DNA of 64,000 nucleotides, from positions 1-64,000 of the IMG/VR virus record IMGVR_UViG_3300023202_000247; one strand, given 5' to 3'. A program made the position numbers and the translations under genes. Below are positions 32,452 to 57,992 of this stretch, in pieces (position 1 is the stretch's first letter; each line of letters starts with the position of its first letter). Under the pieces are notes generated by a model. The model was given only the letters and a program-made list of their open reading frames with translations, was not told where the DNA came from and made no database searches.

Positions 32452-32487
32452 GTAACAAAGAATGCTGTGCTCCTAAAAGTCACAGAC
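32452..32487 (+). CRISPR. Solitary CRISPR repeat, type B (GTAACAAAGAATGCTGTGCTCCTAAAAGTCACAGAC)
   Basis: 36 bp; aligns without gaps to the array repeat at 44040; stem CTGTG/CACAG. Confidence 0.85.
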
Positions 32488-33550
32488 CTGCCATGGATTC
32501 AATTGGCATGCCTCCCGTAAACGTGTACATGCTTCGTCGTCGTAAGAATTACGAGCTACCGAACTGAAGATAAAATAAGAGATTACATTTGCATATGTGG
32601 CAATTGTGACCACGAGTGGAAACAATCTGGAAATATTGACACTTTAAAGGTTTCATGCTCCGAGTGTTTTGATGACGATGATATCGCTTGGCACGAACTG
32701 GAAGATGAAGAGTTTGACAAGACAGTAAACCATTTAGCAGAAGAAATCGAAGGGATTTATGCGCCAGGCGAGCTTTATAACTACGTACAAGACGCTCTAA
32801 TGGAGGAAGCTGCTAAAAAAGCAAAAAGCATTAGATACCAGCAGGATAAACAGCTCGAAGCTCTTGTAAGAGTAAAAGGAAGTGAGTGGGTTAGAAAAAA
32901 TCTAATTCATCCATGGCGCTAACGTTATCGGGCCATATGGCCCGATAAATGGCCCGATACAATTTTGGAATGAGGAAATGGACGATGGCGGGCACAACTT
33001 GGAAAGCAGCATGAGCAGTCACATCTGTTGTCCAGCACAAACCGTAGAGAAAGCTTGTCTCAAAGCTCGCGATGTTTTGGAGCAAAAGCATGAGCAAATT
33101 CTAAAAGAAGGTAAAAACAGGGTAACCAAAGCGGAGGCATCATTGCTACGCTTTTTACGGTAAAGTTCTCGAAAGCGTTCAAAGCCGAAGTGGTGGCGTC
33201 CTTGGATTCCCGCACGATTCAAGCGAGAACCTGACAAACTATCTCTTCGTGAGATGTTGAGACCCAATTGACAGTTGGATCTTTGATTCGTGTGTAAGTG
33301 ACTACATTTTGTATGAACGATATGTATTGCTTGGACGTGCAAAAGAAACCATGCTGCCCGTTTCCTACTCTTATTACGATGACGTGGAAGAGCTGGAACG
33401 CTTGATTAACTTGTGCAACGTTAGCACTGGTGAAATTTTTCTCACCGGTGAAGATTTGAAACTTATCGGCGATTTCCTAGAATCAAGTCCATATCGATGA
33501 TAACAATAGAAAGAAAGGAGGAGGTTATGTATTAACCTCAACAAAGGAGC

Positions 33551-34009
33551 GTGGCCTTGTCCACGAAGAAACTCAGCCGTACGGTCAACGAACGAGGCCG
33601 TAACAAAGGAAACAAAGCTAGGCGTCGTCAGTCCAACAGACGTAACAGACAGCAGGCCAACGTGTTCTTGCGCCAATGCGCACTGGACCCCGACTTGTTC
33701 TCGGAAAAGCCGCTACCAAAACGGGAGCCGGTCCTCAAAGAGTGCGGGGCAAACATGGGACCCTTGTGTCGCTGGATAAACAAGAACATCCAAGGGCTCA
33801 GCTACGATGAGAAACGTGGCCGAGTATTGCAGGCATTCGAGAGAACGAATAGCTTGCGCATCATGTTCGTGTTAATCGATTGCTTAGAAGATGATATAGC
33901 ATTCACGTTGTTTTGCGGATACGAATCCACATACTGGCTATATCCCAAACACACAATCTGGAATAAGAAAAACTATCTTTGCCGAAACCGAACGCCCTGG
34001 AAAGGATAG
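33551..34009 (+). CDS. Arg-rich hypothetical protein, 152 aa
   Basis: AAGGAG RBS and GTG start. Confidence 0.7.
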   Translation: MALSTKKLSRTVNERGRNKGNKARRRQSNRRNRQQANVFLRQCALDPDLFSEKPLPKREPVLKECGANMGPLCRWINKNIQGLSYDEKRGRVLQAFERTNSLRIMFVLIDCLEDDIAFTLFCGYESTYWLYPKHTIWNKKNYLCRNRTPWKG

Positions 34010-34016
34010 TTTCCCT

Positions 34017-34253
34017 TATCACGACCGACCCGCTGGTCGAATGTCTCCGTTGTGTCACGGTTGCCGCAGTGCGTCACAACAAAACGTAGACACAACTGTT
34101 ACACAACGGAGACAAAAGTCGTTACCAGCCAGCGGGCCGGCGTGATATATTCCTTTTCTACCACTCGGCTCGCTATTCGCTCGCCTCGTAACTACTATAA
34201 CAACTCTGATCATATATTGATCGATCTGTAGCTACGAAGACGAGCGTAGCGAG
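34017..34253. other. Non-coding region with nested inverted repeats (origin-like or structured RNA)
   Basis: TGTCTCCGTTGTGT/ACACAACGGAGACA (34042/34101), CCCGCTGG/CCAGCGGG (34029/34129), CTCGCTA/TAGCGAG (34169/34247). Confidence 0.6.
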
Positions 34254-34358
34254 TCTGAGTAGCTTGCAGGTTTTCATTTGATTACATTACCTGATAGTGT
34301 TTTTAACATGGGTAGTTATCATAAAAGGTAATTATGGTGGCAGCCCGCGCTCATAATT

Positions 34359-34392
34359 TTACAAGGATGCTGTGCTCCTAAAAGTCAAGAGC
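34359..34392 (+). CRISPR. Solitary type B repeat with a degenerate 3' end
   Basis: TTACAAGGATGCTGTGCTCCTAAAAGTCAAGAGC, 32 nt upstream of ORF 34425. Confidence 0.75.
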
Positions 34393-34424
34393 TGAACAAG
34401 AACGTATGGATGAAAGAGTAAACA

Positions 34425-34799
34425 ATGCATAAATTTCTCAAGGATATGGAGCAAAGTGGCGACCTACTCCTCTTTAAGCAAAAACAGATGCATCTAAATG
34501 AAGGTCCGACATTCTTTGGCAAGTCATTAACTGAGCGATGCTGTGGTACCAATTCATTTTTGACGGTGCGCTACTCATTCTTCACGTTAGAAATTCGTCA
34601 AGCTTATGACGTAGAAAACGTAAAGAAGAGTTTTACGCCTGTTAGGTGGGAATTGCGTTTCGAAGGTGGTCATGAAATCGACTGGGGTATGGCAGAGACC
34701 GTTGTAGATGCCATCGAAGATGCAGAGTCTGCGTTGCGAAAACGAGTAAAAGAATTCGTAGATATCGTTACGCTTTCTAAGAACGTTTCTAATGATTGA
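34425..34799 (+). CDS. Hypothetical protein, 124 aa
   Basis: ORF track; preceded by a type B repeat. Confidence 0.75.
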   Translation: MHKFLKDMEQSGDLLLFKQKQMHLNEGPTFFGKSLTERCCGTNSFLTVRYSFFTLEIRQAYDVENVKKSFTPVRWELRFEGGHEIDWGMAETVVDAIEDAESALRKRVKEFVDIVTLSKNVSND

Positions 34800-34956: not shown

Positions 34957-35265
34957 ATGAATAGGCTCAAAGAAGACTCCTACAAAGATGCAGCTGCTCT
35001 CATTCGTATGTACAAAAAGTACGATGATGAACGGTTCTTGACCCAAGCAGCTTTTGTGCTGAGTACCACAAACGAATACGGTGTTGAGTTGTCTACGGTG
35101 ATTGCCATGTCGGAGCTGGATGCTGTCAAGGTTAATCATCAAAACCTGATGAAGTTGCACGAGTTCAAGGCTGATGGCCAAAAGGATCCTGTGCCGCTCA
35201 AATGGTGGGTATCAAACTTGTGTGAACTTGACAATCTGTTAAATCATCGAAACTATAATGCCTGA
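34957..35265 (+). CDS. Hypothetical protein, 102 aa
   Basis: ORF track. Confidence 0.7.
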   Translation: MNRLKEDSYKDAAALIRMYKKYDDERFLTQAAFVLSTTNEYGVELSTVIAMSELDAVKVNHQNLMKLHEFKADGQKDPVPLKWWVSNLCELDNLLNHRNYNA

Positions 35266-36517
35266 AAGATTTTTCAATATATTCGAGTACGAATCTTCCA
35301 GTTTAGATGATAACTGTATCATTTATCATGACGTAACGTTTATAAATGACGTTACACAGATCAAAGCTGGAACGAAATTTAGTCAGTGTGCTTTTCAAGT
35401 TGCATCTGGCAGACTAGTAGTTAGTGACGGTCGCACGGTAAATCTCGAGTACTATCAAGAGTTTCTTCGAGAACGCAACCGCTGTGATAAGTGCGGCGGT
35501 CCGGTTGAGCTTCAAAGCAATCTGAAACAATCTTTTTGTATTGACTCTCTATCTAACAATCCTGGTAAAGCATATAATCGTGAATGGATGAGCATTCCAC
35601 ACTGGTGGGAGTATGAGTGGTGTCACAAATGTGAAAGTATATCGGAGAGTGACAAAAAAGAAGTTATGGTTAAGCTCAGGCAAAATTTGAAGCGCTGCAA
35701 GATCGCAGAGAATATCTTGGGCATCTGTGAACGTGGCCATTATCATACACATGGTGGACAACATGTAAAACTAGAAATCAATAAGTCTCCAGATGTAGTT
35801 GCTCATAAAGGTTTCGATTACAAGCCGTTGCTCCATACCCCTCAGTTGAGTGTAAACAACGAAACAACGCAAAACGCCATCTTTCGTTTACATGAAAAAT
35901 ACCCAGAGGCAAGTATCGTTGCGCTGAACTTTGCATCAGCTAAGCGTCCGGGTGGTGGCTTCCTCGAAGGTTCCATGGCGCAAGAGGAAGACTTGTGTTA
36001 TAGTTCAACACTATACGCATCTCTTCGCAATGCTAGTTCGTTTTACGAGATGAATGCTGAAAGCAGGCTGATTTGTGGTCATCCATATAATGCTGGACTT
36101 TACGAAAACGTACTAGCCATTAGTCGCAACGTTGCCTTTATCAAAAATAATGCATATGGAGTTTTTACCAGGCCAACATACGTAGATGTGGTTACATGTG
36201 CCGCACCGAACGCAAACGAATTCTTCAGACTCTATGAGCGTGCTGATAAAGATGGCCAATCAATTTTAGAAGAGGTGTTGGACAAGCGTATTCGTTTCAT
36301 GCTACATGAAATTGGTCCACGGTATGACATTCTCATCTTGGGAGCATGGGGCTGTGGTGTGTTTGGAAATGACCCGCACTTTGTTGCGCGACTGTTCAAA
36401 CAGAACTTGCAAATGGATTTCTGCGAGAAGGTGAAGCTTGCACACTTTCCCGTGTATGACAGGGAACCTGGCTCTAAGACATTCAACACATTTAAAAAGG
36501 TTCTACAGTATGTTTGA
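35258..36517 (+). CDS. TIGR02452-family macrodomain (bacterial PARG-like ADP-ribose glycohydrolase) with an extra N-terminal region
   Basis: LNFASAKRPGGGF...AQEEDLC and ILGAWGCGVFGNDP. Confidence 0.9.
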   Translation: MPERFFNIFEYESSSLDDNCIIYHDVTFINDVTQIKAGTKFSQCAFQVASGRLVVSDGRTVNLEYYQEFLRERNRCDKCGGPVELQSNLKQSFCIDSLSNNPGKAYNREWMSIPHWWEYEWCHKCESISESDKKEVMVKLRQNLKRCKIAENILGICERGHYHTHGGQHVKLEINKSPDVVAHKGFDYKPLLHTPQLSVNNETTQNAIFRLHEKYPEASIVALNFASAKRPGGGFLEGSMAQEEDLCYSSTLYASLRNASSFYEMNAESRLICGHPYNAGLYENVLAISRNVAFIKNNAYGVFTRPTYVDVVTCAAPNANEFFRLYERADKDGQSILEEVLDKRIRFMLHEIGPRYDILILGAWGCGVFGNDPHFVARLFKQNLQMDFCEKVKLAHFPVYDREPGSKTFNTFKKVLQYV

Positions 36518-38476
36518 TAAGCTTGCTCCATTTGGAGCTGCGCAGGTCCATACGGACCAGTATCTGCGCTGGTGTCGACGTGAATTGTCGATGAGTCATA
36601 AAGAATACGAAAGCTGTGGAGAGATCAACGCAACCGGGCTTGCAGAGGCATGTGCTCAGGAGCTTGAAGCATATGTAGATTTTGAAGAATTCAAAATCTA
36701 GCCGGAAGTGTTTGATGCTGCCGCAGAAGCTGCGCTCGAATGGGAGCGAGCTGTAATCAAAGGAGATAATTAAATGCTACATTTCAATCTACCAACTACT
36801 CGCGAGCGTGCTGACTGGGGCTGTTATGGCCGTGGAGTTAGCGAGCAATACCGTCTCGTTGCCATCGAAGATGATGATACGATTCGTGCATGGGATTATG
36901 TTGGTGAAACTTACAGCGTGCATCACGATCTGAGTGATGCAGAGTGCGAAGAGATCAGGCGTATGGCTGTGCTTGTACGTAATGGCAAGTACTATACGGC
37001 TGGCGGCTTCCTCATAAGGAAAGATGAACAAGCGGCGTAAAGCAACCATCATCAAGGTTCTCGAGTCGGCATCTGTACGTATTCAGACGGCTCCGAAAAC
37101 AGCTGCGTGGATGCTTACACATCCCGAGTCTTTGCATGATGAAGCAAAGGTTCGGGATGTGGCCATACAGTATAGTGAGCCATGGATTGGACAACCATTT
37201 ATCGTGGTAGATGTTGAGTATGAGTAAAAAATCTGAAGAAAACGATATGCTCAATGTGAGCGAGAACACTGAACTGATTGGAAGGTAATTAGGTGAGGTT
37301 CAAATGGGAAATAAATTCGCGACTTATTCTTTGGTAGCGGTTCATTCCCGTGAAGCTGGCCAAGTCAGCGGCATGTGGGTGCAGGACCATGTTGGAACTC
37401 TGGACACTGCTAAGAAAGCTGCTGCCCGAACTGAAACTGTGAACGGGAACGTAAAGATCGCAGTGGTTTTCGGAGTCAACAAGACTGGCCCGATGCCGAG
37501 TTATCACGAATGTTTGGTGGAGCTGTGATGGTCATCATATCTTTTCTCACAGGCTATTGTCTATTTTCCTATGTTGCAGCCGGCTTGATTGCAAACAAGC
37601 GTGTCGGAGGCCAAGAAGCCAAAGTTATGTTTGGAGATGTAATGGTTGGTATTCTGTGGCCGTTGTGGATTTCGTTAGCCTGCTTTAAGGCTTTGTATCT
37701 TTTCGCATGTTGGTTGCCCAATGCATTTGTAAGACTTTACAAATGGTCTGTTGTATCTGGTAGTACTGTAAAGACATCGTTGCTTGCAGCAATTTCAATG
37801 TCACTCGGACTTGAGTCTGAGAAAAAGGATGATGTACGAGAGCATGGTGCTTATCGTACATGCGCAAGGGTCGAACTTCTAGAAGTGGACAATGATTATG
37901 ACTACATCGATCGTCCGCTTCTGATTCCAACAGAGGTGAATTGGGATTGGGACTACTCATACGGTGACTGCGAAGATGATGAAGATGGATTTTACGATGA
38001 AAAGTTTCAAAACATGCTGGATGAAAGCCCCGCCATCAAGATGGCAAAGTTTCGAGACGTGATGAATGATGATGGCTAAGCCGATACGATTCGTTGTAAT
38101 CCTACCATCGTTGCTTTTTACATTGAGTGCGTTTATCCTGCTTTGGGTGGCCACTCGAGGTTCGGTGTTTGAGGCGATTGTTTTTCTCATAGCATCGCTC
38201 TTCCATTTCTTTGCAGCTTACAAGTTCTACCTTTACATGGATATGAAAGATGCTCCGTTACCAAAGCGCAAGGAGCATCCGGGTCCATTGGTTGCGTTGG
38301 TATATCCCAATGCATTTCCAAATGTTGACCGGGAAAAACTTCAAGAACATATCAAAGAGTGTTTGCCATGCAGACTCTTTGTTGAAAGCGAATGTGAGAA
38401 CAATCCTCATCGCGATGCGACTCGCGATGAATTGCGTGAAATCTGGGAACGAAGAATAAATAAAGAAACGGAGTAA
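36510..38476 (+). other. Small hypothetical genes, including two membrane proteins (37528-38079, 38066-38476)
   Basis: ORF track; hydrophobic segments. Confidence 0.6.
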
Positions 38477-38573: not shown

Positions 38574-39359
38574 ATGGAAAAGTTACGAGTAGAGATTAAT
38601 TGTCGTGGTAACAAGATGTATTACAAGTGGGATACGGATGAACTGCATAATCCGTATGGTCCAGCTGTTGAATACGCAAATGGAACTAAATATTGGTATC
38701 TAAACGGTAAACATCACAGAGATGATGGCCCAGCTGTTGAATATGCAAATGGAGCTAAAGAGTGGTGGATAAACGATAAGCGTCATCGTGAGGATGGTCC
38801 AGCTGTTGAAGGTGCAAATGGACATAAAGAGTGGTATCTAAACAATAAACTTCATCGTGAAGATGGTCCAGCTGTTGAAGGTGCAAATGGACATAAAGAT
38901 TGGTATCTAAATAGTAAACGTCACCGAGAAGATGGTCCAGCTGTTGAATATGCAAATGGATATAAATCTTGGTGGATAAATGGTAAACGTCACCGAGAAG
39001 ATGGTCCAGCTATTGAATATGCAGATGGATATAAAGATTGGTATGTAAACGGCAAGCTTCATCGTGAAAATGGTCCAGCTGTTGAATTTGCAAATGGACA
39101 TAAAGAATGGTATCTAAACGGTAAACTTCATCGTAAAGATGGTCCAGCAATTGAAAATGCAAATGGACGTAAAGAGTGGTGGGTAAACGGAAAGCTTCAT
39201 CGTGAGGATGGTCCAGCTGTTGAATATGCAAATGGAGATAAATGTTGGTATGTAAATGGTACCAAACTGACAGAAGAAGAGTTCAACAGTCGTCACTCAT
39301 CTTGTACCAGCAAGATTGTTAAGATTGACGGAAAACGCTACAAGTTAGAAGAGATTTGA
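38574..39359 (+). CDS. HREDGPA repeat protein, 9 units
   Basis: Same caps and 23-aa period as array 1. Confidence 0.92.
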   Translation: MEKLRVEINCRGNKMYYKWDTDELHNPYGPAVEYANGTKYWYLNGKHHRDDGPAVEYANGAKEWWINDKRHREDGPAVEGANGHKEWYLNNKLHREDGPAVEGANGHKDWYLNSKRHREDGPAVEYANGYKSWWINGKRHREDGPAIEYADGYKDWYVNGKLHRENGPAVEFANGHKEWYLNGKLHRKDGPAIENANGRKEWWVNGKLHREDGPAVEYANGDKCWYVNGTKLTEEEFNSRHSSCTSKIVKIDGKRYKLEEI

Positions 39360-39802
39360 AAATGGAAAAGATAAGATTAGAGATTAATTGTCGTGGTGAC
39401 AAGAAGTATTACAAGTGGGATACGGATGAGTATCATAATCCATATGGTCCAGCTGTTGAATACGAAAATGGAGATAAATATTGGTATTTAAACGATAAGT
39501 GTCACCGAGAAGATGGTCCAGCTGTTGAACATGCAGATGGGCGTAAAGCTTGGTATCTAAACGGAAATCGTCACCGAGAAGATGGTCCAGCTGTTGAATA
39601 TACAAGTGGGGATAAAGAGTGGTGGGTAAATGGGGTACTTCACCGAGAAGATGGTCCGGCAATTGAAGGTGCAGATGGACGTAAATCTTGGTATGTAAAC
39701 GGTACCAAACTGACAAAAGAAGAATTCAACAGTCGTCACTCATCTTGTACCAGCAAGATTGTGGAGATTGACGGAAAACGTTACAAGCTAGAAGAAGTTT
39801 GA
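39356..39802 (+). CDS. HREDGPA repeat protein, 4 units
   Basis: Paralog. Confidence 0.92.
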   Translation: MKMEKIRLEINCRGDKKYYKWDTDEYHNPYGPAVEYENGDKYWYLNDKCHREDGPAVEHADGRKAWYLNGNRHREDGPAVEYTSGDKEWWVNGVLHREDGPAIEGADGRKSWYVNGTKLTKEEFNSRHSSCTSKIVEIDGKRYKLEEV

Positions 39803-40314
39803 GCATGGAAAAGCTAAGATTAGAGATTGACTGTGATGGTACAAAAAAGTATTACAAGTGGGATATGGATGAACTGCATAATCCATATGGTCCAGCTGTT
39901 GAATACGAAAATGGAGATAAATATTGGTATCTAAACGATAAGCTTCACCGAGAAGATGGTCCAGCTGTTGAACATGCAGATGGAAATAAATCTTGGTATC
40001 TAAACGGTAAACTTCATCGTGAGGGTGGTCCAGCTGTTGAAAATGCAAATGGAGATAAAGAGTGGTGGGTAAACGTAAAGCTTCATCGTGAGGATGGTCC
40101 AGCAGTTGAACATGTAGATGGATCTAAATTTTGGTATGTAAACAACAAGCTTCACCGAGATGATGGTCCAGCTGTTGAATATGCAAATGGAACTAAATGT
40201 TGGTATGTAAACGGTACCAAACTGACAAAAGAAGAATTCAACAGTCGTCACTCATCTTGTACCAGCAAGATTGTGGAGATTGACGGAAAACGTTACAAGC
40301 TAGAAGAGATTTGA
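39799..40314 (+). CDS. HREDGPA repeat protein, 5 units
   Basis: Paralog. Confidence 0.92.
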   Translation: MSMEKLRLEIDCDGTKKYYKWDMDELHNPYGPAVEYENGDKYWYLNDKLHREDGPAVEHADGNKSWYLNGKLHREGGPAVENANGDKEWWVNVKLHREDGPAVEHVDGSKFWYVNNKLHRDDGPAVEYANGTKCWYVNGTKLTKEEFNSRHSSCTSKIVEIDGKRYKLEEI

Positions 40315-40685
40315 AAATGGAAAAGCTAAGATTAGAGATTAATTGTCGTGGTGACAAGAAGTATTACAAGTGGGATACGTGTGAACTGCATAATCCATAT
40401 GGTCCAGCAATTGAATTTGCTGGAGATAAATATTGGTATCTAAACGATAAGTGTCATCGAAAAGATGGTCCAGCAATTGAATTTGTAAATGGAACCAAAT
40501 CTTGGTGGATAAACAATAAACTTCATCGGGAAGATGGTCCAGCAATTGAATGGGCAAATGGATCTAAATATTGGTATGTAAACGGTGTCGAATTGACAGA
40601 GGCAGAGTTCAACAATCGTCACTCATCTTGTGCTGGTAAAGTTGTAGAAATTGACGGAAAACGTTACAAACTAGAAGAGATTTGA
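40311..40685 (+). CDS. HREDGPA repeat protein, 3 units
   Basis: Paralog. Confidence 0.92.
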   Translation: MKMEKLRLEINCRGDKKYYKWDTCELHNPYGPAIEFAGDKYWYLNDKCHRKDGPAIEFVNGTKSWWINNKLHREDGPAIEWANGSKYWYVNGVELTEAEFNNRHSSCAGKVVEIDGKRYKLEEI

Positions 40686-41254
40686 AAATGGAAAAGCTAA
40701 GATTAGAGATTAACCATCATGGTGACAAGAGGTATTACAAGTGGGATACGGATGAACTGCATAATCCGTATGGTCCATCTGTTGAATACAAAAATGGATC
40801 TAAATATTGGTATGTAAACGGCAAGCTTCATCGTGAAAATGGTCCAGCTATTGAATTTGCAAGTGGGCGTAAAGATTGGTATGTAAACGGCAAGCTTCAT
40901 CGTGAAAATAGTCCAGCTATTGAATTTGCAAATGGACATAAAGAATGGTATGTAAACGGTAAACTTCATCGTGAAGATGGTCCAGCACCGGCTGACTCAA
41001 TCACGAGCTGGAACATTCGGGAAGATGATGGTTCGAATCCATCACGGCCGGTCATGCACAAATTGCATAAATTGTTAATATCATTGTGGTTTTTGATGCT
41101 CGTACTCATATGTGTGGGTGACCATGTGTATGAGTATCACGAGTGTAAAAGTATCGAGCAGCGTAGTAAGTTCTCCGTGATAAACGGATGTGAAGTAAAT
41201 GTGGGTGGAACGTGGGTTCCACGGCAAGCGTGGGGTGGTGATAAAAATGAATGA
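40682..41254 (+). CDS. Chimeric ORF: HREDGPA N-terminal part read through into a 66-aa membrane-protein ORF (ATG 41054)
   Basis: Repeat breaks at GPA|PADS (about 40987); MHKLHKLLISLWFL... follows. Confidence 0.7.
   Translation: MKMEKLRLEINHHGDKRYYKWDTDELHNPYGPSVEYKNGSKYWYVNGKLHRENGPAIEFASGRKDWYVNGKLHRENSPAIEFANGHKEWYVNGKLHREDGPAPADSITSWNIREDDGSNPSRPVMHKLHKLLISLWFLMLVLICVGDHVYEYHECKSIEQRSKFSVINGCEVNVGGTWVPRQAWGGDKNE
40986..41054 (+). tRNA. Degenerate tRNA-like element (not a functional tRNA call)
   Basis: GATGG-TTCGAAT-CCATC T-arm, ACCGGC/GCCGGT acceptor-like stem, CTC-AATCAC-GAG D-arm-like; no credible anticodon arm or CCA. Confidence 0.35.
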
Positions 41255-41370: not shown

Positions 41371-41916
41371 ATGCATACGGACAAGATTGTTGATTATATC
41401 AACAGCCGTTTGATAAGTATTCAAAAGAAGTACAACTTTCCTCCGAACGTCAAGTTGCGTGACGTTCCAGATAATAAAGATGCAATAAAACATTATCATC
41501 AATTCAAAGAATTGGTGAGGTTAATTGAAAAAACGAATCTCGACGTTGATATTCCGTATGACGAGAGTGGTGAGTCGCCCACAGAAAAGTTTGTGAAGCT
41601 CACTCAACGTGATGTATTCGTTTACTTCTGCCAAGAAGGCTTCTCCACAACTTGGAAGATTGGATACTCAACCCAATCATTTCGAAGAATAAAAGCAGTG
41701 CAGACTGGCAATCCGAACGATTTGCACTTGCGCTATGAGGTGCCTGGTTCCTTTGACCTAGAGCAAAGCCTTCATAGGTATCTGAAGAACTTTAGAATCA
41801 AGGGTCGGTCGAAGGAGTGGTTCGACCTTGACCCTGCAATGGTTGAGAACATTGTTAAACGCCTGAAAAATGGCGAAGATTTTTATACACAAAAGGCTTT
41901 GAAAAATGAAACGTAA
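41371..41916 (+). CDS. GIY-YIG (T5orf172/MUG113-like) domain protein
   Basis: VYFCQEG...WKIGYS...IKAVQTGNP...LEQSLHRYL...EWF. Confidence 0.85.
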   Translation: MHTDKIVDYINSRLISIQKKYNFPPNVKLRDVPDNKDAIKHYHQFKELVRLIEKTNLDVDIPYDESGESPTEKFVKLTQRDVFVYFCQEGFSTTWKIGYSTQSFRRIKAVQTGNPNDLHLRYEVPGSFDLEQSLHRYLKNFRIKGRSKEWFDLDPAMVENIVKRLKNGEDFYTQKALKNET

Positions 41917-43921: not shown

Positions 43922-44039
43922 TTTCATTGCTAAAGATGTAGAATGAGAAAATAATTTTGCAAGTTGTTATAATAATAATTTGCAACCTCTTGCAAAACAA
44001 CCCGTAACCATTTGAAATCATTGATGATTTCAAATGGGG
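43899..44039 (+). promoter_or_regulatory. CRISPR leader copy 1 with an extended -10 promoter (TGTTATAAT, 43965-43973) and a 14-bp palindrome
   Basis: CCATTTGAAATCAT-TG-ATGATTTCAAATGG directly before repeat 1; duplicated at 44526-44686. Confidence 0.8.
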
Positions 44040-44183
44040 GTAACAAAGGATGCTACGCTCCTTAAAGTTGTAGACGATTGGTTGGGAGTGGAGTCGCTAC
44101 GTCGAGCCAGGTAACAAAGGATGCTACGCTCCTTAAAGTCACAGACAAACTCAAAGAATGCTGTGCTCCTAAAAGTCACAGAC
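44040..44183 (+). CRISPR. Mini-array 1: type A repeat, 35-nt spacer, A/B hybrid repeat (44111-44146), type B repeat (44148-44183)
   Basis: Direct inspection. Confidence 0.9.
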
Positions 44184-44213: not shown

Positions 44214-44519
44214 ATGAAGAAGAGTAACGAAACGAATTTTTCATCAGCATATTTCCACATTTACAATGGTGGAATGTCAATTTCTATCGTCAAAATATCT
44301 GAAGGTGATACCTTAGAATTTAGATTGAGAATTGCAAACTCAATTTTCGGAGCAGCGTTTAGTCATGAATTTCCGTTGCCTCCACCAAAGGGGTTGCGTT
44401 GGATTGCAAAATCCTTTGAAAGTTTGGCTGATTATATAGAGAAAGAATCAGCCAATGGTCATAACAGTATTTCTCCATTTGAGACCATCCAGATAAATGG
44501 TAGCGAATCTAAGCTTTAA
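44214..44519 (+). CDS. Hypothetical protein, 101 aa, embedded in the CRISPR locus
   Basis: ATG 30 nt after a type B repeat; stop just before leader copy 2. Confidence 0.7.
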   Translation: MKKSNETNFSSAYFHIYNGGMSISIVKISEGDTLEFRLRIANSIFGAAFSHEFPLPPPKGLRWIAKSFESLADYIEKESANGHNSISPFETIQINGSESKL

Positions 44520-44525
44520 AGGACT

Positions 44526-44686
44526 CTCGCAAAAGTGCAAGTGCGTGATTTCATTGCAATCGGAGACAGCATGCCCCTAAAGATGTAGACTGAAAAAATA
44601 ATTTTGCAAGTTGTTATAATAATAATCTGCAACCACTCGCAAAACAACCCGTAACCATTTGAAATCATTGATGATTTCAAATGGGG
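44526..44686 (+). promoter_or_regulatory. CRISPR leader copy 2
   Basis: Near-identical to leader 1 with a 20-nt insertion; TGTTATAAT at 44612-44620. Confidence 0.8.
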
Positions 44687-51446: not shown

Positions 51447-53645
51447 ATGAGATTTCAAAAGCCTGAAAGTACTGTAATTAGCGCAAGTACTCCTGAAAAA
51501 GTTTCGGAGTTTGGAATTCGTAAGAAGGATATGGTATTCGTCTTGTCGATTTTGCGCGACAAGATGTACTCCGATCCTATGGGAGCGATCTGTCGAGAGA
51601 TTGCATGCAATGCTCGTGACGCTCATCGCGAAGCTGGCATTCCCGATACTCCAATCGAGATTTATCTGCCGAGCGCAACCAGTCCACACATCGAGTTTGT
51701 CGACTTTGGGCCTGGAATCAATCCCACGCGCATGGAAGATATTTTCATCAACTATGGTGCAAGTACCAAGCGTAAGAGCAACCAACAGACTGGTGGCTTT
51801 GGCCTGGGCGCAAAGACTCCGTTTGCGTACACGGATACGTTTAGCGTTGTTACGGTTTGGAACGGTAAGAAGCGCGAGTATACGGCATTCATTGATGATA
51901 GCCGCCACGGTTTGCTACATCTCGTTCGTACGTCTGATACGGATGAACCCACTGGTACTCGTATTATCGTTCCAGTTACTCCGTACGACAACGATCGTTT
52001 CATTACAAAGGCAGTGAAAGCAACCAAATACTGGAGTGTAAAGCCAAAATTCCACGGGCTTTCCAAGCACGTTGTCAGCGATGAGCCGTTGGCGGTACTG
52101 CTAGAGGACGAAGACTATATTATCTTCGACAACAACAAGACCTTATCATCGGATAAGTTTGCACTCGTAGATGAAATTCCATATGATTTCAAGATTCACG
52201 ATGTAATCGAAGATAGTGAGGAGCTTCAACACCTCAAATTCAAGCACATGTGTCTCAAGTTTAACACCGGTGAAGTCATCATGACTCCCAACCGTGAGAG
52301 CTTGCAGCTCGATGATTATACGAAAAAGAGCCTTCTCAAAAAACTGGTTGCTGTTAACGAAAAGCTTGTCAAGCAAGCTTTTGAAAAAGTTGATCGGCAA
52401 CAGTATCTCGATGATGCTGAATATGCTTTGATGGGTGCTGGGACCATCATTGGTACAAAGAATATTCCAGATGAATATTTCTGGAATGATGTCAAGCTTC
52501 GCTGTTCGACCATGCGTAAGGCTGGCAAGCTTGATGAGATGCAAATCATCAAGTATTTTTGGAAAACTCGTCGCAGTGGCCAATACATCGAGTCTGATAC
52601 AGTTAGCCATCTAGAATTGGATTGTAAGATTATCGTCGATCACAATTGGGAGATTGATGATGATGGCAAGCGCAAGTTCTTGCATGGACGCAATACGATT
52701 ACTCGATACGTCCGTCATTACATGCAAAAGGTTGCGGGCGGTGCATCTTTTGATGATGTTTATTATGTCGTCCGATTCCACAACGATGCGACTGAGCAAA
52801 AGTGGCTTGACCAAATCAAGTATCTAAACCCAGCAAACGTTATTGACTTTGCAAATTTGCCCAAGCCTCCGCGCAAGCGTGGTGGTAGTCGCCGCCACGT
52901 TGAACGTGGTAGTATCGATGCGTATTGTCTCAATAGGTACTATCTTGGTAATTATGACCATGATAGGTACTTGAAGCCGGAAATCATCGAAAAAGATGGA
53001 GAAGGTGTTTACATCATTTCATTTAGCAAGTCGAAGCGTCATTTTGGCGCAGGTGATTTGAAGATTGATTCCATCTTTAGCCTGCCACTAGCACTGAAGT
53101 CTTTCTATGAAAGTGTGACTGGTGAATCTCTAAAGATTCACGTTGTGTCCAAGCGCTTCGAGAAGACTCTCGGTGACGACTGGGTTCGCCTCGACGATTT
53201 CATCAAGGAAAACGTCGAGGACTTGTTTGACAAGGTCGATGTGCGCATGGCAAACACGCATGCTAAAGTCAAACGCTTTCAACGAACTCTCGAGGACAGG
53301 GACCTCGAAGTCGCTATGGAGCTTGATAAAGAGTTTGCTGCATTCTTGGAAAAAATCAAGGATATTAAAGCACCACCGTTTATCAAACTAATTGCAGAGT
53401 CTGTGGGTTTCGATCTGGAATCCTATGGTCGTGACGAGGAATTGTGCAAAGAGGCCGAGCGTTTCAAGCATTATTTCTTGTTAGATGGTTATTATGGAAA
53501 AAAGCGTCGAGACATTATCAATCTTATGATTGATTACAGACGCTTGAAAGATTTGGAAAAAGACGGTGGTCTCTCTGAGACCGAGGAAAACGAAAATGTT
53601 CAGCTTAACGCTGACGAGTTGCAACAATTGAACGAAGCAGTCTAA
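51447..53645 (+). CDS. rIIA: RIIA-like protein (GHKL/HSP90-type ATPase N-terminus)
   Basis: REIACNARDAH, DFGPGI, TGGFGLGAK; adjacent to rIIB. Confidence 0.88.
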   Translation: MRFQKPESTVISASTPEKVSEFGIRKKDMVFVLSILRDKMYSDPMGAICREIACNARDAHREAGIPDTPIEIYLPSATSPHIEFVDFGPGINPTRMEDIFINYGASTKRKSNQQTGGFGLGAKTPFAYTDTFSVVTVWNGKKREYTAFIDDSRHGLLHLVRTSDTDEPTGTRIIVPVTPYDNDRFITKAVKATKYWSVKPKFHGLSKHVVSDEPLAVLLEDEDYIIFDNNKTLSSDKFALVDEIPYDFKIHDVIEDSEELQHLKFKHMCLKFNTGEVIMTPNRESLQLDDYTKKSLLKKLVAVNEKLVKQAFEKVDRQQYLDDAEYALMGAGTIIGTKNIPDEYFWNDVKLRCSTMRKAGKLDEMQIIKYFWKTRRSGQYIESDTVSHLELDCKIIVDHNWEIDDDGKRKFLHGRNTITRYVRHYMQKVAGGASFDDVYYVVRFHNDATEQKWLDQIKYLNPANVIDFANLPKPPRKRGGSRRHVERGSIDAYCLNRYYLGNYDHDRYLKPEIIEKDGEGVYIISFSKSKRHFGAGDLKIDSIFSLPLALKSFYESVTGESLKIHVVSKRFEKTLGDDWVRLDDFIKENVEDLFDKVDVRMANTHAKVKRFQRTLEDRDLEVAMELDKEFAAFLEKIKDIKAPPFIKLIAESVGFDLESYGRDEELCKEAERFKHYFLLDGYYGKKRRDIINLMIDYRRLKDLEKDGGLSETEENENVQLNADELQQLNEAV

Positions 53646-54553
53646 TGGGAAAAATTACAGCACATACTTTGACCAAGCAATCATTTACGGTTTCTTGGGT
53701 TGATGACGACGACAAGTCGCGCTTTCGCACCATCAATGCGGATGACCCCGTGTATGAGAAATGTAAGGAAGCACTAAAAGACGGTGACGAAGAGTTGATT
53801 CTCAAGCTTCTTTATGAAGTTGAGAATAAGGTTAAGGCATCGATTGATAAAACGTTGGCAGCTGGCGTAGAGCTGGTTGAGGGTCGCTACGTCACTATCG
53901 ATGGTGAGACTGTTGGCCAAGAGTTGAGCAAGCGTATCATGGATCTTGCCGAGGAAGGGCTTCCATTTGATGCGATGGTTGAGTTCTGGCGAAACCTTTC
54001 CGAGAACCCATCGTTCCGTGCGGTGACTGGGCTGTTCAGGTTCTTGGAGACCAATCACTTCCCCATTACACCCGATGGACATTTCATTGCGTGGAAGGGA
54101 ATCGGTAGTAACTTCAAGGATCTTCACTCTAACACTATGGATAATAGTGTCGGGGCGGTTGTAAAGATGCCGCGCAATCATGTGAACGAAGATCCGAACG
54201 TCGCATGTGCAACAGGCTTGCATGTTGCAAGTCACGAGTACGCCACTGAAAACTATGGTGGCGCTGTCGTTGTCGAGGTTAAGGTCAATCCCAAGAACGT
54301 CGTTGCAGTCCCGTACGACCATAATTCTGAGAAGCTTCGCGCTTGTGAGTATAAGGTTGTGCGTGTCGCTCGTGAACCCATCATGGATCAGGTCTTTGAC
54401 GATAACGCTCTCGATAATGAGACTCGCGTTGTTGACATTGACAATGATTATGATGATGACGATGACGAGGATTATAACCCCGGCGTTTCACACGTTAGTC
54501 CTTATAATGATTACGAGGATGATGAGGATGACGATGATGACGATGATTGGTGA
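53645..54553 (+). CDS. rIIB: RIIB-like protein with an acidic tail
   Basis: FLETNHFPITPDGHFIAWKGI, CATGLHVAS, VNPKNVVAVPYD. Confidence 0.88.
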   Translation: MGKITAHTLTKQSFTVSWVDDDDKSRFRTINADDPVYEKCKEALKDGDEELILKLLYEVENKVKASIDKTLAAGVELVEGRYVTIDGETVGQELSKRIMDLAEEGLPFDAMVEFWRNLSENPSFRAVTGLFRFLETNHFPITPDGHFIAWKGIGSNFKDLHSNTMDNSVGAVVKMPRNHVNEDPNVACATGLHVASHEYATENYGGAVVVEVKVNPKNVVAVPYDHNSEKLRACEYKVVRVAREPIMDQVFDDNALDNETRVVDIDNDYDDDDDEDYNPGVSHVSPYNDYEDDEDDDDDDDW

Positions 54554-54678
54554 GGTGTAGAGATTTGGGTTAATGCCCTGCTTGATGCAGATGATTCTCT
54601 TCAAACTCTTTATGATGTCTTGGCTCGTGTAGCCTGCTTGCGTAGTGGCGAAACATGGTGTTCAGATAAATAAATCTC

Positions 54679-55497
54679 ATGTCCCGCATCAATGAGTATG
54701 TAGGTCCGAAAGAGAGCGTCCGCAAGGACGCTCTTTTTCGTTATACCTCTGACAAATGGCTTGCCCAAGAAAAGCATGATGGTGTTTGGGCATTGATTTC
54801 AACCGATGAGTATGGCAAGATTGAATCCATCATATCTCGTACGGGTTTGCAGCATCCCGACGAGTACACACGTGGATTCATCGGTCTCGGTATCGGACTC
54901 ACATCTAGCAAGCTCGTTGCAGAGCTAGAGGCCGGAACGCAAGCTGCAACGAAACGTTTCAAGCGTAATGGTTATCGTAAGATTTGGTTCTTTGATGTCA
55001 TTCAGTTGCTCGGAAAAGATATTCATGAGCTAAGCCTGGAACAACGTCTTCACCTACTAAAGAGAGCATTACCATCTTCTCGAAACTTTTCCATCGTAAG
55101 AACTTCAAACTCTAACCTAGAGCAGTTCTATGACGAAGTTATGGCTGCCGGTGGTGAAGGAATCGTTCTCAAACAAAAAGATAGCAAGTACATTTCCGAA
55201 TATTCCAGTGGTAAAACCACCAAGTGGGTGCGCTGTAAACCTACGAATACACTGGACTTTTTCGTCATGGGTACTGGGTTGACGGAAAGTCGTGTACCGA
55301 ATTTGGAGCTTGGCCTTTACAAGAATGGTAAGCTGTGTTATGTTCAGTCGCTCACGGTCCCGAAGGGTTATCGAGCGAAGGAGCTGGTTGGCAAGGTAAT
55401 CGAGTGTGTCGGAGACGTGCAGATGGACTCGGGAGCGCTGAGACATGCACGTTTCAAAAGAGTGAGAAATGACAAAAATCCCGAAGCATGCACGTAG
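54679..55497 (+). CDS. lig: Minimal ATP-dependent DNA ligase
   Basis: Motif I QEKHDG, motif IV EGIVLK, motif V region KWVRCKP, C-terminal OB fold. Confidence 0.9.
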   Translation: MSRINEYVGPKESVRKDALFRYTSDKWLAQEKHDGVWALISTDEYGKIESIISRTGLQHPDEYTRGFIGLGIGLTSSKLVAELEAGTQAATKRFKRNGYRKIWFFDVIQLLGKDIHELSLEQRLHLLKRALPSSRNFSIVRTSNSNLEQFYDEVMAAGGEGIVLKQKDSKYISEYSSGKTTKWVRCKPTNTLDFFVMGTGLTESRVPNLELGLYKNGKLCYVQSLTVPKGYRAKELVGKVIECVGDVQMDSGALRHARFKRVRNDKNPEACT

Positions 55498-55741
55498 TTT
55501 GATTGTTACATATGAGTCGACACGTGCTCTTGGTCTTCCATGGAATCCATTGGCAGCCAGACGTGCACAAATGCAAGTCTGCGATGCTGTGGATAGTATG
55601 CGAAAGTATCAAAGCTTGCTCAATTCTAACGAAGAATTCGTAAAAGTTTGGGCAGTTCAAAAAGAACTTATTGATCGATACGTAGTTGAACTCCAACTAA
55701 TCAAAGATCCAAAGGTAGAGTTGAAAAATGAAAAGTACTAA
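55469..55741 (+). CDS. Hypothetical protein, 90 aa
   Basis: Overlaps lig and ku. Confidence 0.65.
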   Translation: MTKIPKHARSLIVTYESTRALGLPWNPLAARRAQMQVCDAVDSMRKYQSLLNSNEEFVKVWAVQKELIDRYVVELQLIKDPKVELKNEKY

Positions 55742-56597
55742 GAAGAGTGGTGCTCCGCGTGCAACTGGTAGTGCGGTCATTTCGTTCGGAATGGTTTCCA
55801 TTCCCGTCAAGCTGTATACTTCTACGAAAGATGAGAGTGTTCGTTTTAACATGATCAACCCTGCAACGCACAATCGTTGCAAGCAGAAGATTGTGGATGC
55901 GGTGACCGAGGAAGAGGTTAATCGCAACGAAACTCTCAAAGGTTTCGAGTATCAGAAAGATAACATCGTTACCTTCACCAAAGAAGAATTGGAAAAGCTC
56001 TCGGCATCTCAAGACAAGATGGTTGAGATTACCGAGTTCGTCAACAGCGATGACATCGATCCTGTTTACTTCTCCAAGAGTTACTATCTTGGTGCAGACA
56101 AGGGTGGAGATAAGCCTTACGCATTGCTGACCGAGGTAATGCGACGCACTGGTCGCGTAGCTATTGGTCGCTGGTATACTCGTGGCCAGGGACGATTGGT
56201 TCTGCTTGCACCATACGGTGAAGGATTGATTCTTCACCAGCTATGGTATGCTAATGAGGTTCGAGGCTGTGAGCACATTGCTCCAGAAGCTACGGTTTCT
56301 GAACAAGAAATTGCTCTTGCTGAGAAGCTTGTGGCCACGCTTGCCAGTGATGAGTTCGATGCAACCAAGTATCGTGACGAGTATGGTGACCGTGTGCGTG
56401 AGAGTGCGGAGTTGAAGGCTGCTGGTGGTGAGATTGCAACCCCGCAGGTCGAGAACAAAACCAATGTTACCGACCTGTTTGCTGCTCTCAACGCTAGTCT
56501 CGATAAGGTTGAGACCAAGGAAACGAAGGCAACTAAGAAAAAGGCTGCAAAGAAGACCGCACGTAAGCGCTCAACGAAAAAGAAGGCTTCGTCATAA
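55728..56597 (+). CDS. ku: Ku (NHEJ DNA end-binding) protein
   Basis: ISFGMVSIPVKLY, IDPVYFSKSYYL, DKPYALL, basic C-terminal tail. Confidence 0.95.
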   Translation: MKSTKKSGAPRATGSAVISFGMVSIPVKLYTSTKDESVRFNMINPATHNRCKQKIVDAVTEEEVNRNETLKGFEYQKDNIVTFTKEELEKLSASQDKMVEITEFVNSDDIDPVYFSKSYYLGADKGGDKPYALLTEVMRRTGRVAIGRWYTRGQGRLVLLAPYGEGLILHQLWYANEVRGCEHIAPEATVSEQEIALAEKLVATLASDEFDATKYRDEYGDRVRESAELKAAGGEIATPQVENKTNVTDLFAALNASLDKVETKETKATKKKAAKKTARKRSTKKKASS

Positions 56598-57071
56598 TAG
56601 GAGAAAAACGGTTTGAGGTATCGGCCGACATGCGCGACTGCACAGTATCATTGAATTTGAGGAAGAAAACAATGAAAAAGTTTTTCAAAATGGACGAACG
56701 TACACGTCTGGAGGATTGAAAAATGGAAGAGCAGAATCATATGACAAACGAAGAAAATCAACAATGGTGGGACAAATACGAATATATTCAAAAGCACCAT
56801 GCTTTGATGTGTCAAATTCCATTTGAAAAACGCAAGGTTGGCGACCTCACCGTTTTTCAGTTTAAGGAAATGATTGCTCCGGTTATTCGTCTACATGCAT
56901 TTGTTGCTTGTTTTGTGAGTACGTTTTTCATGGTACTACTTATTTTGTTCTGCTTGGCCTGAACGACGTTTGATTCCTCGGAAAGCCCGGAATCGCGATT
57001 ACGCCAATATACCGTACGCTCGCAAATATGGACTATGAAAAAGAATAGTTAGCAAAGAAAGCAATGGTTGG

Positions 57072-57482
57072 GTGAATCTAAACTTTAAATTCTCCGAAGA
57101 CATTGAAGAGGAGAATAGAGGTTTTATTTGTCATAAGCTCTCGGTCGTAGCAAACGACCGAGAGCTTGGCTATATCAAAGTAAGCTACATTCCAAGCTCA
57201 GTTTACAGAACGTGCTATGCATCTGCGCTCGATTATGCAGTTAAGCATGCTGGTTGGCATATGGATGATAGATTCTACGACCTTGCGACTGTTTCCTATT
57301 CGAGAGTATATGAAGAGTTTCAACGAAAAGGTATTGCTACAGCTATGTATCTTGAGATGGCCCGACAGCTCAAGAAAAGGTACTATATCAAGCTAAGAGC
57401 TAGTGCTCTTTGGGAATCCTTCAAAGAAAAGGGCTTGACAAAAACCTGGGAAGGATTTACAATACTGAATCCTTTAGAATAA
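57072..57482 (+). CDS. GNAT-like acetyltransferase
   Basis: VYEEFQRKGIATAMY acetyl-CoA motif A. Confidence 0.65.
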   Translation: MNLNFKFSEDIEEENRGFICHKLSVVANDRELGYIKVSYIPSSVYRTCYASALDYAVKHAGWHMDDRFYDLATVSYSRVYEEFQRKGIATAMYLEMARQLKKRYYIKLRASALWESFKEKGLTKTWEGFTILNPLE

Positions 57483-57492
57483 GGAGAGTCGA

Positions 57493-57792
57493 ATGCTTCC
57501 GGACGAACAAAGACTGCTAGATTTCTTCAACAACAAGTCAAAACCATTCGACCCAGCGTCTGATGGGCCGACCATTGGTCATCCAAATGGATACAATCCG
57601 AAAGATATTTGTCTAGCATCTGATCAATGGTTGGAGGAGTCTCACGATTAGTGGGCCTTTCCTTTGCCGGAAAGGTCGACGTTTAACCCGTCGGCTCCGG
57701 TTCTCACCGAGACTTGCGTTGCTTTGATCAACCGCAATTCGCTTTACAGCATGTTTGATCGGATGATGCAGTTTTACTTTCGGAACACTTAG
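57493..57792 (+). pseudogene. OGFr-N-like (opioid growth factor receptor conserved region) pseudogene
   Basis: DQWLEESHD*WAFPLPERSTFNPSAPVLT resembles WLE..HDYIQWLFPL.E.S.FNP.APVLT; in-frame TAG at 57649. Confidence 0.6.
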
Positions 57793-57882
57793 GTCACAGA
57801 CAAGTATCGTAGTTAGATGGAGCCTCAGTGGTAACGCAGAACGTGAGACGAGGCTGTCACTGCATTTGATCTACGAAGAATT

Positions 57883-57992
57883 TTTACAAAGGATGCTGTG
57901 CTCCTAAAAGTCACAGACGGCTTGACGCCGCCAGAATTCGTGATTAGCATGATGTTTCATCACAAAGGATGCTGTGCTCCTAAGTCACAGAC
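57883..57992 (+). CRISPR. Mini-array of two type B repeats (57883-57918, about 57958-57992) around a spacer of about 40 nt
   Basis: Direct inspection; the second repeat has a 2-nt deletion in the loop; a further 3'-end remnant GTCACAGAC lies at 57793-57801. Confidence 0.85.
57922..57950 (+). promoter_or_regulatory. sigma70-type promoter occupying the mini-array spacer
   Basis: TTGACG, exactly 17 bp, TAGCAT; predicted start site about 57957, at the 5' end of the second repeat. Confidence 0.65.

Follow-up and report, generated by a model that had tools for sequence, protein, structure and literature searches.

Why does a phage that encodes its own Cas12m-like protein beside a CRISPR array also carry single repeats of a second type, scattered along its genome? 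This question is raised by bases 1-64000 (the whole stretch of 64,000 nt, called the window in the following) of the phage contig IMGVR_UViG_3300023202_000247, which at 321,461 bp represents a very large phage genome and to which no resembling deposited phage was found. The repeat of the array is termed type A and that of the scattered units type B; a third type, D, occurs in a sibling strain. The solo repeats are units in the form of a CRISPR RNA (crRNA) handle, the 3′ boundary of which coincides with a break in homology to repeat-less alleles of relatives, and these alleles carry a Cas12m protospacer adjacent motif (PAM) at the break. Our preferred reading, to which we assign a probability of about one half, is that the solo repeats are fragments of Cas12m arrays joined to their own protospacers, which would provide guides against relatives without the repeat.

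The relatives were gathered by cluster and contig look-ups and are of two kinds: near-identical strains (99-100% identity; L085, L086, L088, L089, L091 and L150) and a lineage of 82-91% identity from Logan assemblies (L008, L087, L090, L092, L093, L148 and L149).

Solo repeats along the phage contig

A first-pass annotation of the window, made from the sequence without database searches, had listed a set of B copies, all on the plus strand. These copies are real, with exact B cores at 32462, 44158 and 57893. The covariance model that had been suggested as a check was built from A and B with a 7-bp structure and run on both strands of the window with filters off. It recovered exactly the A and B copies described here and additionally two decayed repeats at the array end (45317 and 45346), and it found none on the minus strand. 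Apart from the B repeat within the array, which is described further below, the following B-type features are present in the window:

32452-32487, plus strand: B repeat, in frame inside a 73-aa open reading frame (ORF) at 32346-32567
34358-34391, plus strand: decayed B repeat without its 3′ arm; the ATG of a 124-aa ORF (34425-34799) follows after 33 nt
57791-57801, plus strand: 3′ remnant of B (10-11 nt), which opens a B mini-array
57883-57918, plus strand: B repeat of the mini-array
57919-57958, plus strand: 40-nt spacer of the mini-array, homologous to L087 2632-2671, where TTT precedes it
57959-57992, plus strand: B′ repeat, equal to B minus 2 loop nt; homology to L087 resumes at 57993

Six further B copies were found outside the window on the same contig (at ~72.6, 108.1, 108.7 and 117 kb). 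One B stands at ~72.6 kb (L003) and B-AAA-B doublets at ~108.1 and ~108.7 kb (L005), while at ~117 kb (L007) a decayed A-like repeat is followed by 12 nt, a B repeat, 29 nt and a terminator-like hairpin. Altogether, eleven B units and one A/B hybrid span 32-117 kb of the contig, all on the plus strand. Exact and degenerate pattern scans of IMG/VR for B matched this contig alone. Two modules recur: the B-AAA-B doublet stands at three loci (44111-44183 and twice in L005), and the succession of remnant, 81-nt spacer (57802-57882) and B at two (57791-57918 and L003, where remnant and spacer reappear at ~72.5 kb of the contig). Within this spacer, the 34-nt segment 57845-57878 is exactly inverted relative to L003 170-203 (2 mismatches), and, as oriented in the window, it is able to base-pair with the spacer's 5′ part.

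The B copies of the window are present in the near-identical strains as well, and the decayed copy at 34358 is unchanged in L086 and L089. Because these six strains are 99-100% identical, purifying selection on B cannot be demonstrated from them. Solo repeats are gained or lost between 99%-identical strains, as strain L086 carries a solo D repeat that the window does not have. At the locus of the 73-aa ORF, the 99%-identical strain L085 differs from the window over the aligned 311 nt (window 32330-32640) solely in that 3 nt are deleted at the 5′ edge of B (L085 3640-3643 compared with window 32449-32452). The 82-91% lineage lacks B at the locus of the 73-aa ORF, at the helix-turn-helix (HTH) locus that follows the mini-array and at the L005 and L007 loci. 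A separate B-type repeat is present in this lineage on contig L148, which begins within the repeat; there (L148 1-100) the repeat abuts sequence that can be read as the D-loop to 3′ end of a tRNA-Lys(UUU), so that it looks as if this repeat were joined inside a tRNA gene.

Right-hand junctions and the PAM rule

At seven junctions, the 60 nt after the repeat were locally aligned to the repeat-less allele, and the alignment starts at the first base of the flank in 7/7 cases. The bases at positions -3 to -1 of the repeat-less alleles are TTG, TTG, TTT, TTG, TTG, TTT and ATC. Thus, TT occupies -3/-2 in six of the seven alleles (TTG in four, TTT in two; binomial P(≥6/7) = 6.9e-7 with a background TT frequency of 0.069), which we call the PAM rule in the following. 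If the tested position is shifted by 1-6 bases either way, TT is obtained in 0-2 of the seven only. Over the first 17 flank bases, the seven junctions show 11, 17, 15, 14, 15, 16 and 16 matches. The PAMs of Cas12m enzymes are T- or C-rich, with 5′-TTN reported for Cas12m2 and GoCas12m (PMC10442227, PMC11013384). TTG and TTT at the joints fit this motif, and the PAM of the phage Cas12m would accordingly be read as TTN. At the locus of the carrier, the PAM position is occupied by the repeat end, GAC.

For the D unit of L086, the target is perfect and present today. Its flank matches the window in 17/17 positions (60/60 overall) from 36715 onwards, directly adjoining a TTG:

36712-36731, plus strand: TTG PAM (36712-36714) and protospacer, the repeat-less allele in the window, 43 nt upstream of the ORF 36774-37040

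The relative L092 is without the B repeat of 32452 and has TTG before the homologous flank. In the mini-array 57791-57992, the 40-nt piece and the final flank are collinear with two PAM-flanked sites lying 437 nt apart in L087/L090. The spacer 57919-57958 matches these contigs in 15/17 positions next to TTT, and L087 has TTG where homology resumes at window 57993.

The earlier suggestion that B copies are single-guide units for programmed regulation by the Cas12m of the phage holds for their form, since a PAM-compatible guide follows the solo repeat. For regulation of the phage's own genes, no support was found: the targets are repeat-less alleles of the same locus in relatives, and no second target of the solo-unit guides was found in the 85 kb of contig searched. 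Complementarity to downstream genes (the spacer following 57918 with 58085, the flank following 44183 with 44220) was dismissed as being at chance level in blastn-short (E ~0.5, no TTN). Matches of 17-mers from the L007 guide and the spacer at 57919 in IMG/VR were either self matches or chance sites without TTN. For the 17-mer of the 81-nt spacer, 54 contigs were returned, but every match lies in the same conserved gene of an unrelated group of phage contigs (mostly 50-100 kb) and diverges past base 17; this is one chance match multiplied.

Repeat structure and fit to Cas12m

The claim of two covarying repeat types is confirmed: the stem CUACG/UGUAG of A is replaced by CUGUG/CACAG in B. The changes are located in one 5-bp stem (AU to GC, CG to UA and GU to GC), two of the three being fully compensatory and the third a GU-to-GC change, and the B stem is the stronger one. 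A conserved RNA fold is likewise borne out, with 98.6% of cells paired versus 25-46% if the partner is slid by 1-3 columns. Related stems are all paired as well, namely CCACG/UGUGG in type D (L086), CUCGG/CCGAG in L049 and the variants CUCAG/UUGAG and CUCAA/UUGAG in contig 3300037149_000121, and the first repeat of the relative L008 begins with CCAUG. In all, four phage lineages provide six stem variants that covary. In L008, a relative of 86% identity, the array repeat is similar to the D unit.

Nine B copies have an identical 26-nt core, with 5′ ends and flanks that all differ. Their first 5-7 nt vary (GTAAC, TTTAC, AACTC, ATCAC, GCAAT), conservation begins ~31 nt from the 3′ end with a single variable position thereafter, and G13, A35 and C36 are kept. 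Every B copy ends with CACAGAC, and beyond this point the sequences are unrelated. The crRNA of Cas12m2 is disordered over the repeat nucleotides -36 to -30, with base-specific readout of a G:A pair and of C(-1), and its stem is held via the backbone. The conservation of B from about -31 to the last C matches this ordered scaffold, which argues for a fit of B to a Cas12m crRNA. Since the differences between A and B coincide with pairs that Cas12m2 contacts through the backbone alone, one Cas12m protein could use both handles.

Two other explanations of the sequence were rejected. The alternative fold AAGGA/UCCUU is the minimum-energy fold of A and is broken in B copies having GAATG. The reading of B as a sigma-70 promoter (TTTACA, 16 nt, TAAAAG) applies to three copies only and was missed by a promoter scan.

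The Cas12m effector and the split array

The effector gene and the array form one region of the window, on the plus strand throughout:

41371-41916, plus strand: T5orf172/MUG113-domain gene (Pfam PF13455, 1.5e-12; PF10544, 1e-11), overlapping the start of cas12m
41906-43921, plus strand: cas12m-like gene, 671 aa
43922-44039, plus strand: array leader copy 1, aligned with copy 2
44040-44075, plus strand: A repeat, first of a mini-array, followed by a 35-nt spacer (44076-44110)
44111-44146, plus strand: A/B hybrid repeat with the 5′ arm of A and the 3′ arm of B, stem broken
44148-44183, plus strand: B repeat, second unit of a B-type doublet (AAA between), 30 nt before the ATG of the 101-aa ORF
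44214-44519, plus strand: 101-aa ORF inside the array, no family match
44524-44686, plus strand: duplicate of the last ~25 nt of cas12m and leader copy 2, with a decayed repeat at ~44557-44590
44687-45381, plus strand: main A array, in which spacers of 30-46 nt separate ten repeats and two decayed ones stand at the end (45317 and 45346)

The 671-aa protein has no Pfam or PHROG family match. A phmmer search against PDB returned a Cas12m chain (23vw_A, 1.2e-24), 8pm4_A (deposited as 'Transposase', 1.5e-07) and UnCas12m4a (23vu_A, 3.6e-07), and among the weaker structural-database matches are UnCas12m4a and Cas12m2. In an alignment with nine homologues, D346 of the RuvC domain (in DIGWR) is invariant and D641 is conserved, as are without exception the zinc-finger cysteines C616, C631 and C634. 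Together with the PDB match, these positions support the original assignment to Cas12 proteins of the Cas12m kind, compact effectors with a RuvC fold into which a zinc-finger (TNB) domain is inserted. RuvC motif II has an alanine (LVIAKLN compared with LVIEDFDL), whereas the nine homologues have E (eight) or R; the alanine recurs in the 86%-identical relative P0002. The description of the RuvC domain as probably dead is thus reasonable on sequence grounds, and the phage Cas12m is probably unable to cut DNA. Cas12m enzymes bind DNA without cutting it even when they have a D-E-D triad (PMC10442227, PMC11013384), and Cas12m processes its own pre-crRNA independently of RuvC (PMC11013384).

A second Cas12m that might be the cognate effector of B was considered, and none was found on the contig. 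No cas1, cas2 or cas4 was detected among the scanned ORFs flanking cas12m, which encode T5orf172, proteins without assignment and DUF7168/DUF2786. The pairing of T5orf172 with cas12m and the gene order are the same in the 86%-identical relative L008. With 28 phage Cas12m loci found in IMG/VR, phage Cas12m is widespread; a 2026 preprint considers its own case, from a myxophage, to be the first phage Cas12m.

The 36-nt A repeat has 11 matches with up to three mismatches in the window (one at 44040, ten at 44687-45293), where shuffled sequences predict 0. The array is split, with the order leader, A, spacer, hybrid, AAA, B, 101-aa ORF, duplicate of cas12m end and leader, ten-repeat array, and the main part contains a 213-nt segmental duplication. 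Judged by its two arms, the hybrid at 44111-44146 is the product of a crossover that joined the two repeat types, and from this it follows that the repeat types do recombine. A comparison of the array spacers with 50,697 phage records, with 72,556 plasmids and with the relative contigs examined revealed no protospacer. Directly before the first repeat, both leader copies contain a perfect 30-nt palindrome (44008-44037 and 44655-44684), which is largely conserved in the 86% relative (L008 ~3059-3088) and may be an operator or an RNA hairpin.

Left-hand joints and position relative to genes

The left-hand joints all differ. They are irregular and delete or replace sequence. At 32452, the B repeat and ~19 nt to its left replace ~22 nt of the ORF of the relative, with the frame kept. 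The D unit of L086 is preceded by sequence resembling an array leader. At the position of the second L005 doublet, L148 contains 1.6 kb that encode three genes, and the doublet is followed by the 3′ end of a 248-aa gene without a start codon. At the HTH locus, ORF 57493-57651 is the 75%-identical remainder of an OGFr_N-like gene, followed by the remnant, the spacer and B. The 40-nt piece corresponds to L087 2632-2671, which spans the end of the OGFr_N-like gene and the beginning of an HTH gene encoding 320 aa. After B′ the window continues as L087 from 3069 onwards, and ~400 nt of the L087 HTH gene are missing:

58050-58556, plus strand: HTH_17 gene, 168 aa (Pfam PF12728, 6e-12), the 3′ half of the 320-aa L087 gene

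The placement of B copies at gene starts, as originally described, applies to a part of them. The repeats ending at 44183, 57992 and 34391 (decayed) lie 30-57 nt before start codons, whereas the copy at 32452 is in frame inside the 73-aa ORF and two copies are at gene-truncating junctions. The repeat 57883-57918, in the same mini-array as the copy ending at 57992, lies a further 74 nt upstream of the start codon. Because several copies stand at deletion junctions that truncated genes, the placement is partly a by-product of truncation, and original targets near promoters and 5′ ends may also have contributed to it. The first site of the HTH locus in L087 overlaps a promoter-like sequence (TTGACG, 17 nt, TAAGAT), 30 nt before the start codon. 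Among the genes downstream of B, HTH_17 is the only family match.

Some neighbouring genes are of interest in this context. At 53645-56597, 58602-59783 and 35258-36517 the window encodes an rIIB-like protein, an ATP-dependent DNA ligase adjoining Ku, a radical SAM enzyme of the spore-photoproduct-lyase type and a PARG-like protein. Ligase and Ku represent an end-joining pair, and end joining could be behind the irregular left-hand joints. Close to the 32452 repeat, a zinc-ribbon ORF (CxC...CxxC, 32521-32922) has 133 open codons without ATG, GTG or TTG before codon 94. The corresponding gene of L092 starts with an ordinary ATG (MNDFVCICGNC), and the ORF of the window is either a pseudogene or has an unusual start.

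A model for origin and action of the solo units

Our reading covers the B units of the window, the D unit of the sibling strain and the B-type unit of the relative lineage. In each copy, the repeat portion held by Cas12m in the mature crRNA is retained, and the copy ends exactly at the repeat/spacer boundary, so that native phage sequence after the solo repeat would serve as the spacer. Once transcribed and loaded on the non-cutting Cas12m, the RNA of a solo unit would bind the repeat-less allele of a co-infecting relative and block transcription or replication of this allele. As the PAM is replaced by the repeat end, the carrier's own locus would be exempt. The guides are all in sense orientation and would therefore pair with the template strand.

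Most likely, the units originated when a spacer in an array carried by a phage crossed over with its protospacer in the genome of a relative, while a second joint of irregular form arose on the left. If the units came from arrays of sibling lineages, the difference between the solo types (B, D) and the type of the resident array (A) would be explained. Recombination between spacers and protospacers has been documented for phages and bacterial arrays (PMC8616872, citing Varble 2019 and Watson 2018). According to the summary given there, a crossover within ~35 bp of spacer/protospacer homology joins array and phage DNA at the repeat/spacer boundary. The cases summarised concern host arrays and transducing particles; they include neither an exchange between two phages nor the formation of stable, dispersed guide units in phage genomes, both of which are proposed here.

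Several points weigh against this reading. One junction is without TTN (B of L007 compared with L148, ATC). The guides match the 82-91% lineage in 11-16 of 17 positions, no better than the surrounding DNA does, so most B units may be relics with respect to this lineage. An array built of B repeats was not found in IMG/VR, genome or metagenome scans. There are also no adaptation genes among the ORFs scanned beside cas12m, which leaves the original source of the spacers unexplained. The first unit of each doublet, with a spacer of 3 nt (AAA), has no usable guide, and identical modules stand at several loci (the doublet at three, remnant-spacer-B at two). This recurrence is the main loose end, and as a sequence pattern it is more readily accommodated by a mobile unit or by gene conversion than by independent array crossovers.

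Alternative explanations

Most of the remaining probability falls to units of the same origin without a present function. Such inert scars, e.g. recombinants that escaped a rival Cas12m by loss of the PAM, share the junction and PAM evidence with the preferred reading to the full. The decay of two copies (34358 and 57959), the truncation of genes by the insertions and guides that are conserved no better than neighbouring DNA would all be expected of them. We consider this explanation unlikely in spite of these points: nine B copies share a 26-nt core although their 5′ ends and flanks differ, all copies are co-oriented with transcription, the cognate Cas12m and the positions that define its fold are retained, and a co-occurring strain contains a perfect target of the D unit next to a PAM. 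A mobile unit, in which the solo repeats would be the right ends of a small element inserting next to TTK, appears quite improbable. In TnpB/IS200-IS605 elements, the guide RNA scaffold ends at the right end of the element, the guide corresponds to the flank at the empty site, and TnpB is ancestral to Cas12m. The omega-RNA of these elements is similar in that its scaffold terminates at the border of a variable segment, the flank acts as guide and the empty site has a motif; here, TTK adjoins the right-hand joint of the empty allele in the manner of a target-adjacent motif. The recurrence of identical modules at separate loci (44111-44183 and two sites in L005; 57791-57918 and L003) would also be explained, and the B repeat of 32452 comes near to being a clean in-frame insert of 36 nt. 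However, there is no conserved left end, the left joints differ and do not keep the motif, and most events are replacements or deletions rather than clean insertions. No transposase family, Y1 included, was detected among the neighbours scanned near the locus, and the 40-nt piece between B and B′ has the size of a spacer. A further mechanism with low odds, comparable to those of the mobile unit, is an allele drive based on Cas12m, where Cas12m guided to the repeat-less allele of a co-infecting relative would cause a stalled fork or an R-loop, and recombination provoked by it would copy the repeat and linked DNA into that genome. In that case, the homing logic of a selfish TnpB ancestor would persist in a CRISPR effector, with the dispersed repeats as a record of successive drives.

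The proposal that the B copies are cis-acting tags on mRNA leaders, where Cas12m would bind or cut the B hairpin and thereby alter stability or translation of the downstream message, agrees with the sense orientation of every copy and with five loci at which the last repeat lies 11-57 nt before a start codon (34391, 44183, 57992, L003 and the first L005 doublet). Moreover, processing of repeats in RNA by Cas12m does not need RuvC (PMC11013384). This proposal leaves the TTN exactly at the joint of repeat-less alleles unexplained, together with the copy inside an ORF, the gene-truncating junctions, one of which leaves a gene remnant without start codon behind the repeat, the terminator hairpin between one copy and the next gene, and the gain and loss of copies between 99%-identical strains; we regard it as very doubtful. 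Least probable are RNA anti-CRISPR decoys that would soak up the Cas12m of a host or of a rival phage. Doublets with a spacer of only 3 nt and a B stem that differs from that of the resident array, and exceeds it in strength, would suit such a role, and solitary repeat units of other phages, the Racrs, have this function (PMC10651486). While those are phage-encoded solitary repeats as well, they mimic host repeats and have no working guide; here, 6/7 flanks are PAM-compatible, the cognate effector is encoded by the phage itself, and the PAM rule would find no explanation. The suggested decoy function against a host type V system found no support, since no A- or B-type array was present in 185,579 GTDB species genomes, in the JGI metagenome collection or in other IMG/VR contigs, although this absence is no proof because the host is unidentified. 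Pattern scans of genomes and metagenomes for A and B repeats returned chance single matches in coding DNA only.

Comparison with known systems

By its effector, its repeat and its inferred PAM, the system is to be placed in type V-M. With the described members (Cas12m2, GoCas12m and MsCas12m; PMC10442227, PMC11013384) it shares the effector family, the 36-nt repeat and a 3′ stem closed by G:A with a terminal C, and also the TTN PAM (inferred here) and a locus without an adaptation module, as judged from the flanking ORFs scanned. DNA binding without cutting, as in these members, is probable for the phage protein on sequence grounds. It differs in the length of the protein (671 aa with two insertions), in a D-A-D triad that is not among the published triads, and in being phage-borne.

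Viral mini-CRISPR arrays, which are short arrays or single units used in conflicts with related viruses (PMC11656645, summarising Medvedeva 2019 and Faure 2019), are alike in that their spacers match relatives while the carrier is spared. This is also seen here, with 15/17 matches for 57919-57958, 17/17 for the D unit and 11-16/17 for the others. In the summarised cases, repeats copy the host array and the host Cas is borrowed; here, no host-identical repeats were found in the GTDB species genomes, and the repeats are of the type of the phage's own Cas12m. Furthermore, our units are scattered over 85 kb, each on the locus that it matches, with the downstream sequence of the carrier as spacer. 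Standalone regulatory repeats (the SRU upstream of cas12a, CreR and scaRNA; Shmakov 2023, PMC10120712) are off-array too, consist of single repeats or of units with two repeats, and are often degenerate, read by the effector and thought to arise by repeat recombination. They lie in or beside the cas locus and have spacers partly complementary to a promoter of the same genome, whereas our copies range from 9.5 kb upstream to 73 kb downstream of cas12m, most of them 7-73 kb away from it, and have no target found in the 85 kb of their own genome searched, which speaks against an autoregulatory crRNA-like function.

Solo off-array repeats were also detected in other Cas12m phages (L044, L049/L050 and L055), and the phenomenon is hence not peculiar to this genome. 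In L056, the arrays mix two compensatory repeat variants. In L049/L050 (5381-5486), the solo repeat equals the array repeat and is followed after ~38 nt by a decayed copy on the opposite strand, so that a convergent pair surrounds one 'spacer'. The Cas12m phage L055 (3300023202_000205, from the same metagenome) has arrays on both sides of cas12m, and a solo repeat with 2 mismatches (9861-9896) lies ~90 nt upstream of the cas12m start, as at cas12a loci. Contig 3300037149_000121 contains arrays of 48 and 5 repeats of the homologous repeat AAGGATGCTCAGCTCCTTA..., flanking ORFs of 673 and 648 aa (features at L079 2862-3173, L079 3235-5256, L072 53-1999 and L072 2136-5467). For neither ORF was a solved-structure match obtained; the second one is faintly Cas12m-like and apparently ends after RuvC motif II. 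On an unrelated viral contig of 24.6 kb (L071 9318-9355), a single, intergenic repeat-like element is preceded by a terminator hairpin and followed by a hairpin, a ribosome-binding site and an ATG. Its arrangement is like that of the L007 copy and may be due to chance.

What is new here is the junction rule together with its implications, and not the solo repeats as such; the best-supported interpretation of the units departs from the main ideas of the first-pass annotation. Standalone repeats of viruses have previously been read as decoys or as mini-arrays that borrow the host Cas. Here, repeats are fused to the phage's own genes at PAM-adjacent positions, an arrangement in which self would be marked by removal of the PAM and the unmarked allele of relatives would be targetable. 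Active units would constitute a simple, locus-by-locus discrimination against sibling strains and a natural case of guide RNAs contained in ordinary transcripts. As relics, the units would preserve a legible history of earlier CRISPR attacks among phages and of escape via recombination with the array of the attacker. Either way, the junctions yield a predicted PAM of an uncharacterised Cas12m from sequence alone, and they indicate that phage arrays without adaptation genes evolve by recombination. In addition, A, B and D represent matched handle variants for probing what Cas12m reads in a crRNA.

Further features of the contig

Rfam and tRNA scans of the 64-kb window gave no matches. At the contig start (1-631), an 80-nt tandem repeat of 7.9 copies with 99% identity may mark a genome terminus or the edge of the assembly. 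Blocks of a MORN-type 69-nt repeat were found at 27190-28884 and 38574-41254 of the window and at L005 2209-3093, one of them directly upstream of the T5orf172-cas12m pair. They are organised in higher-order units of ~441-443 nt, which correspond to successive ORFs of ~146-190 aa with -1 frame shifts and TTGA stop overlaps. An RtcB RNA ligase of 800 aa carries an intein-like insert (L007 3379-5781), and in L148 (13708 onward) the protein has 468 aa and is without the insert.

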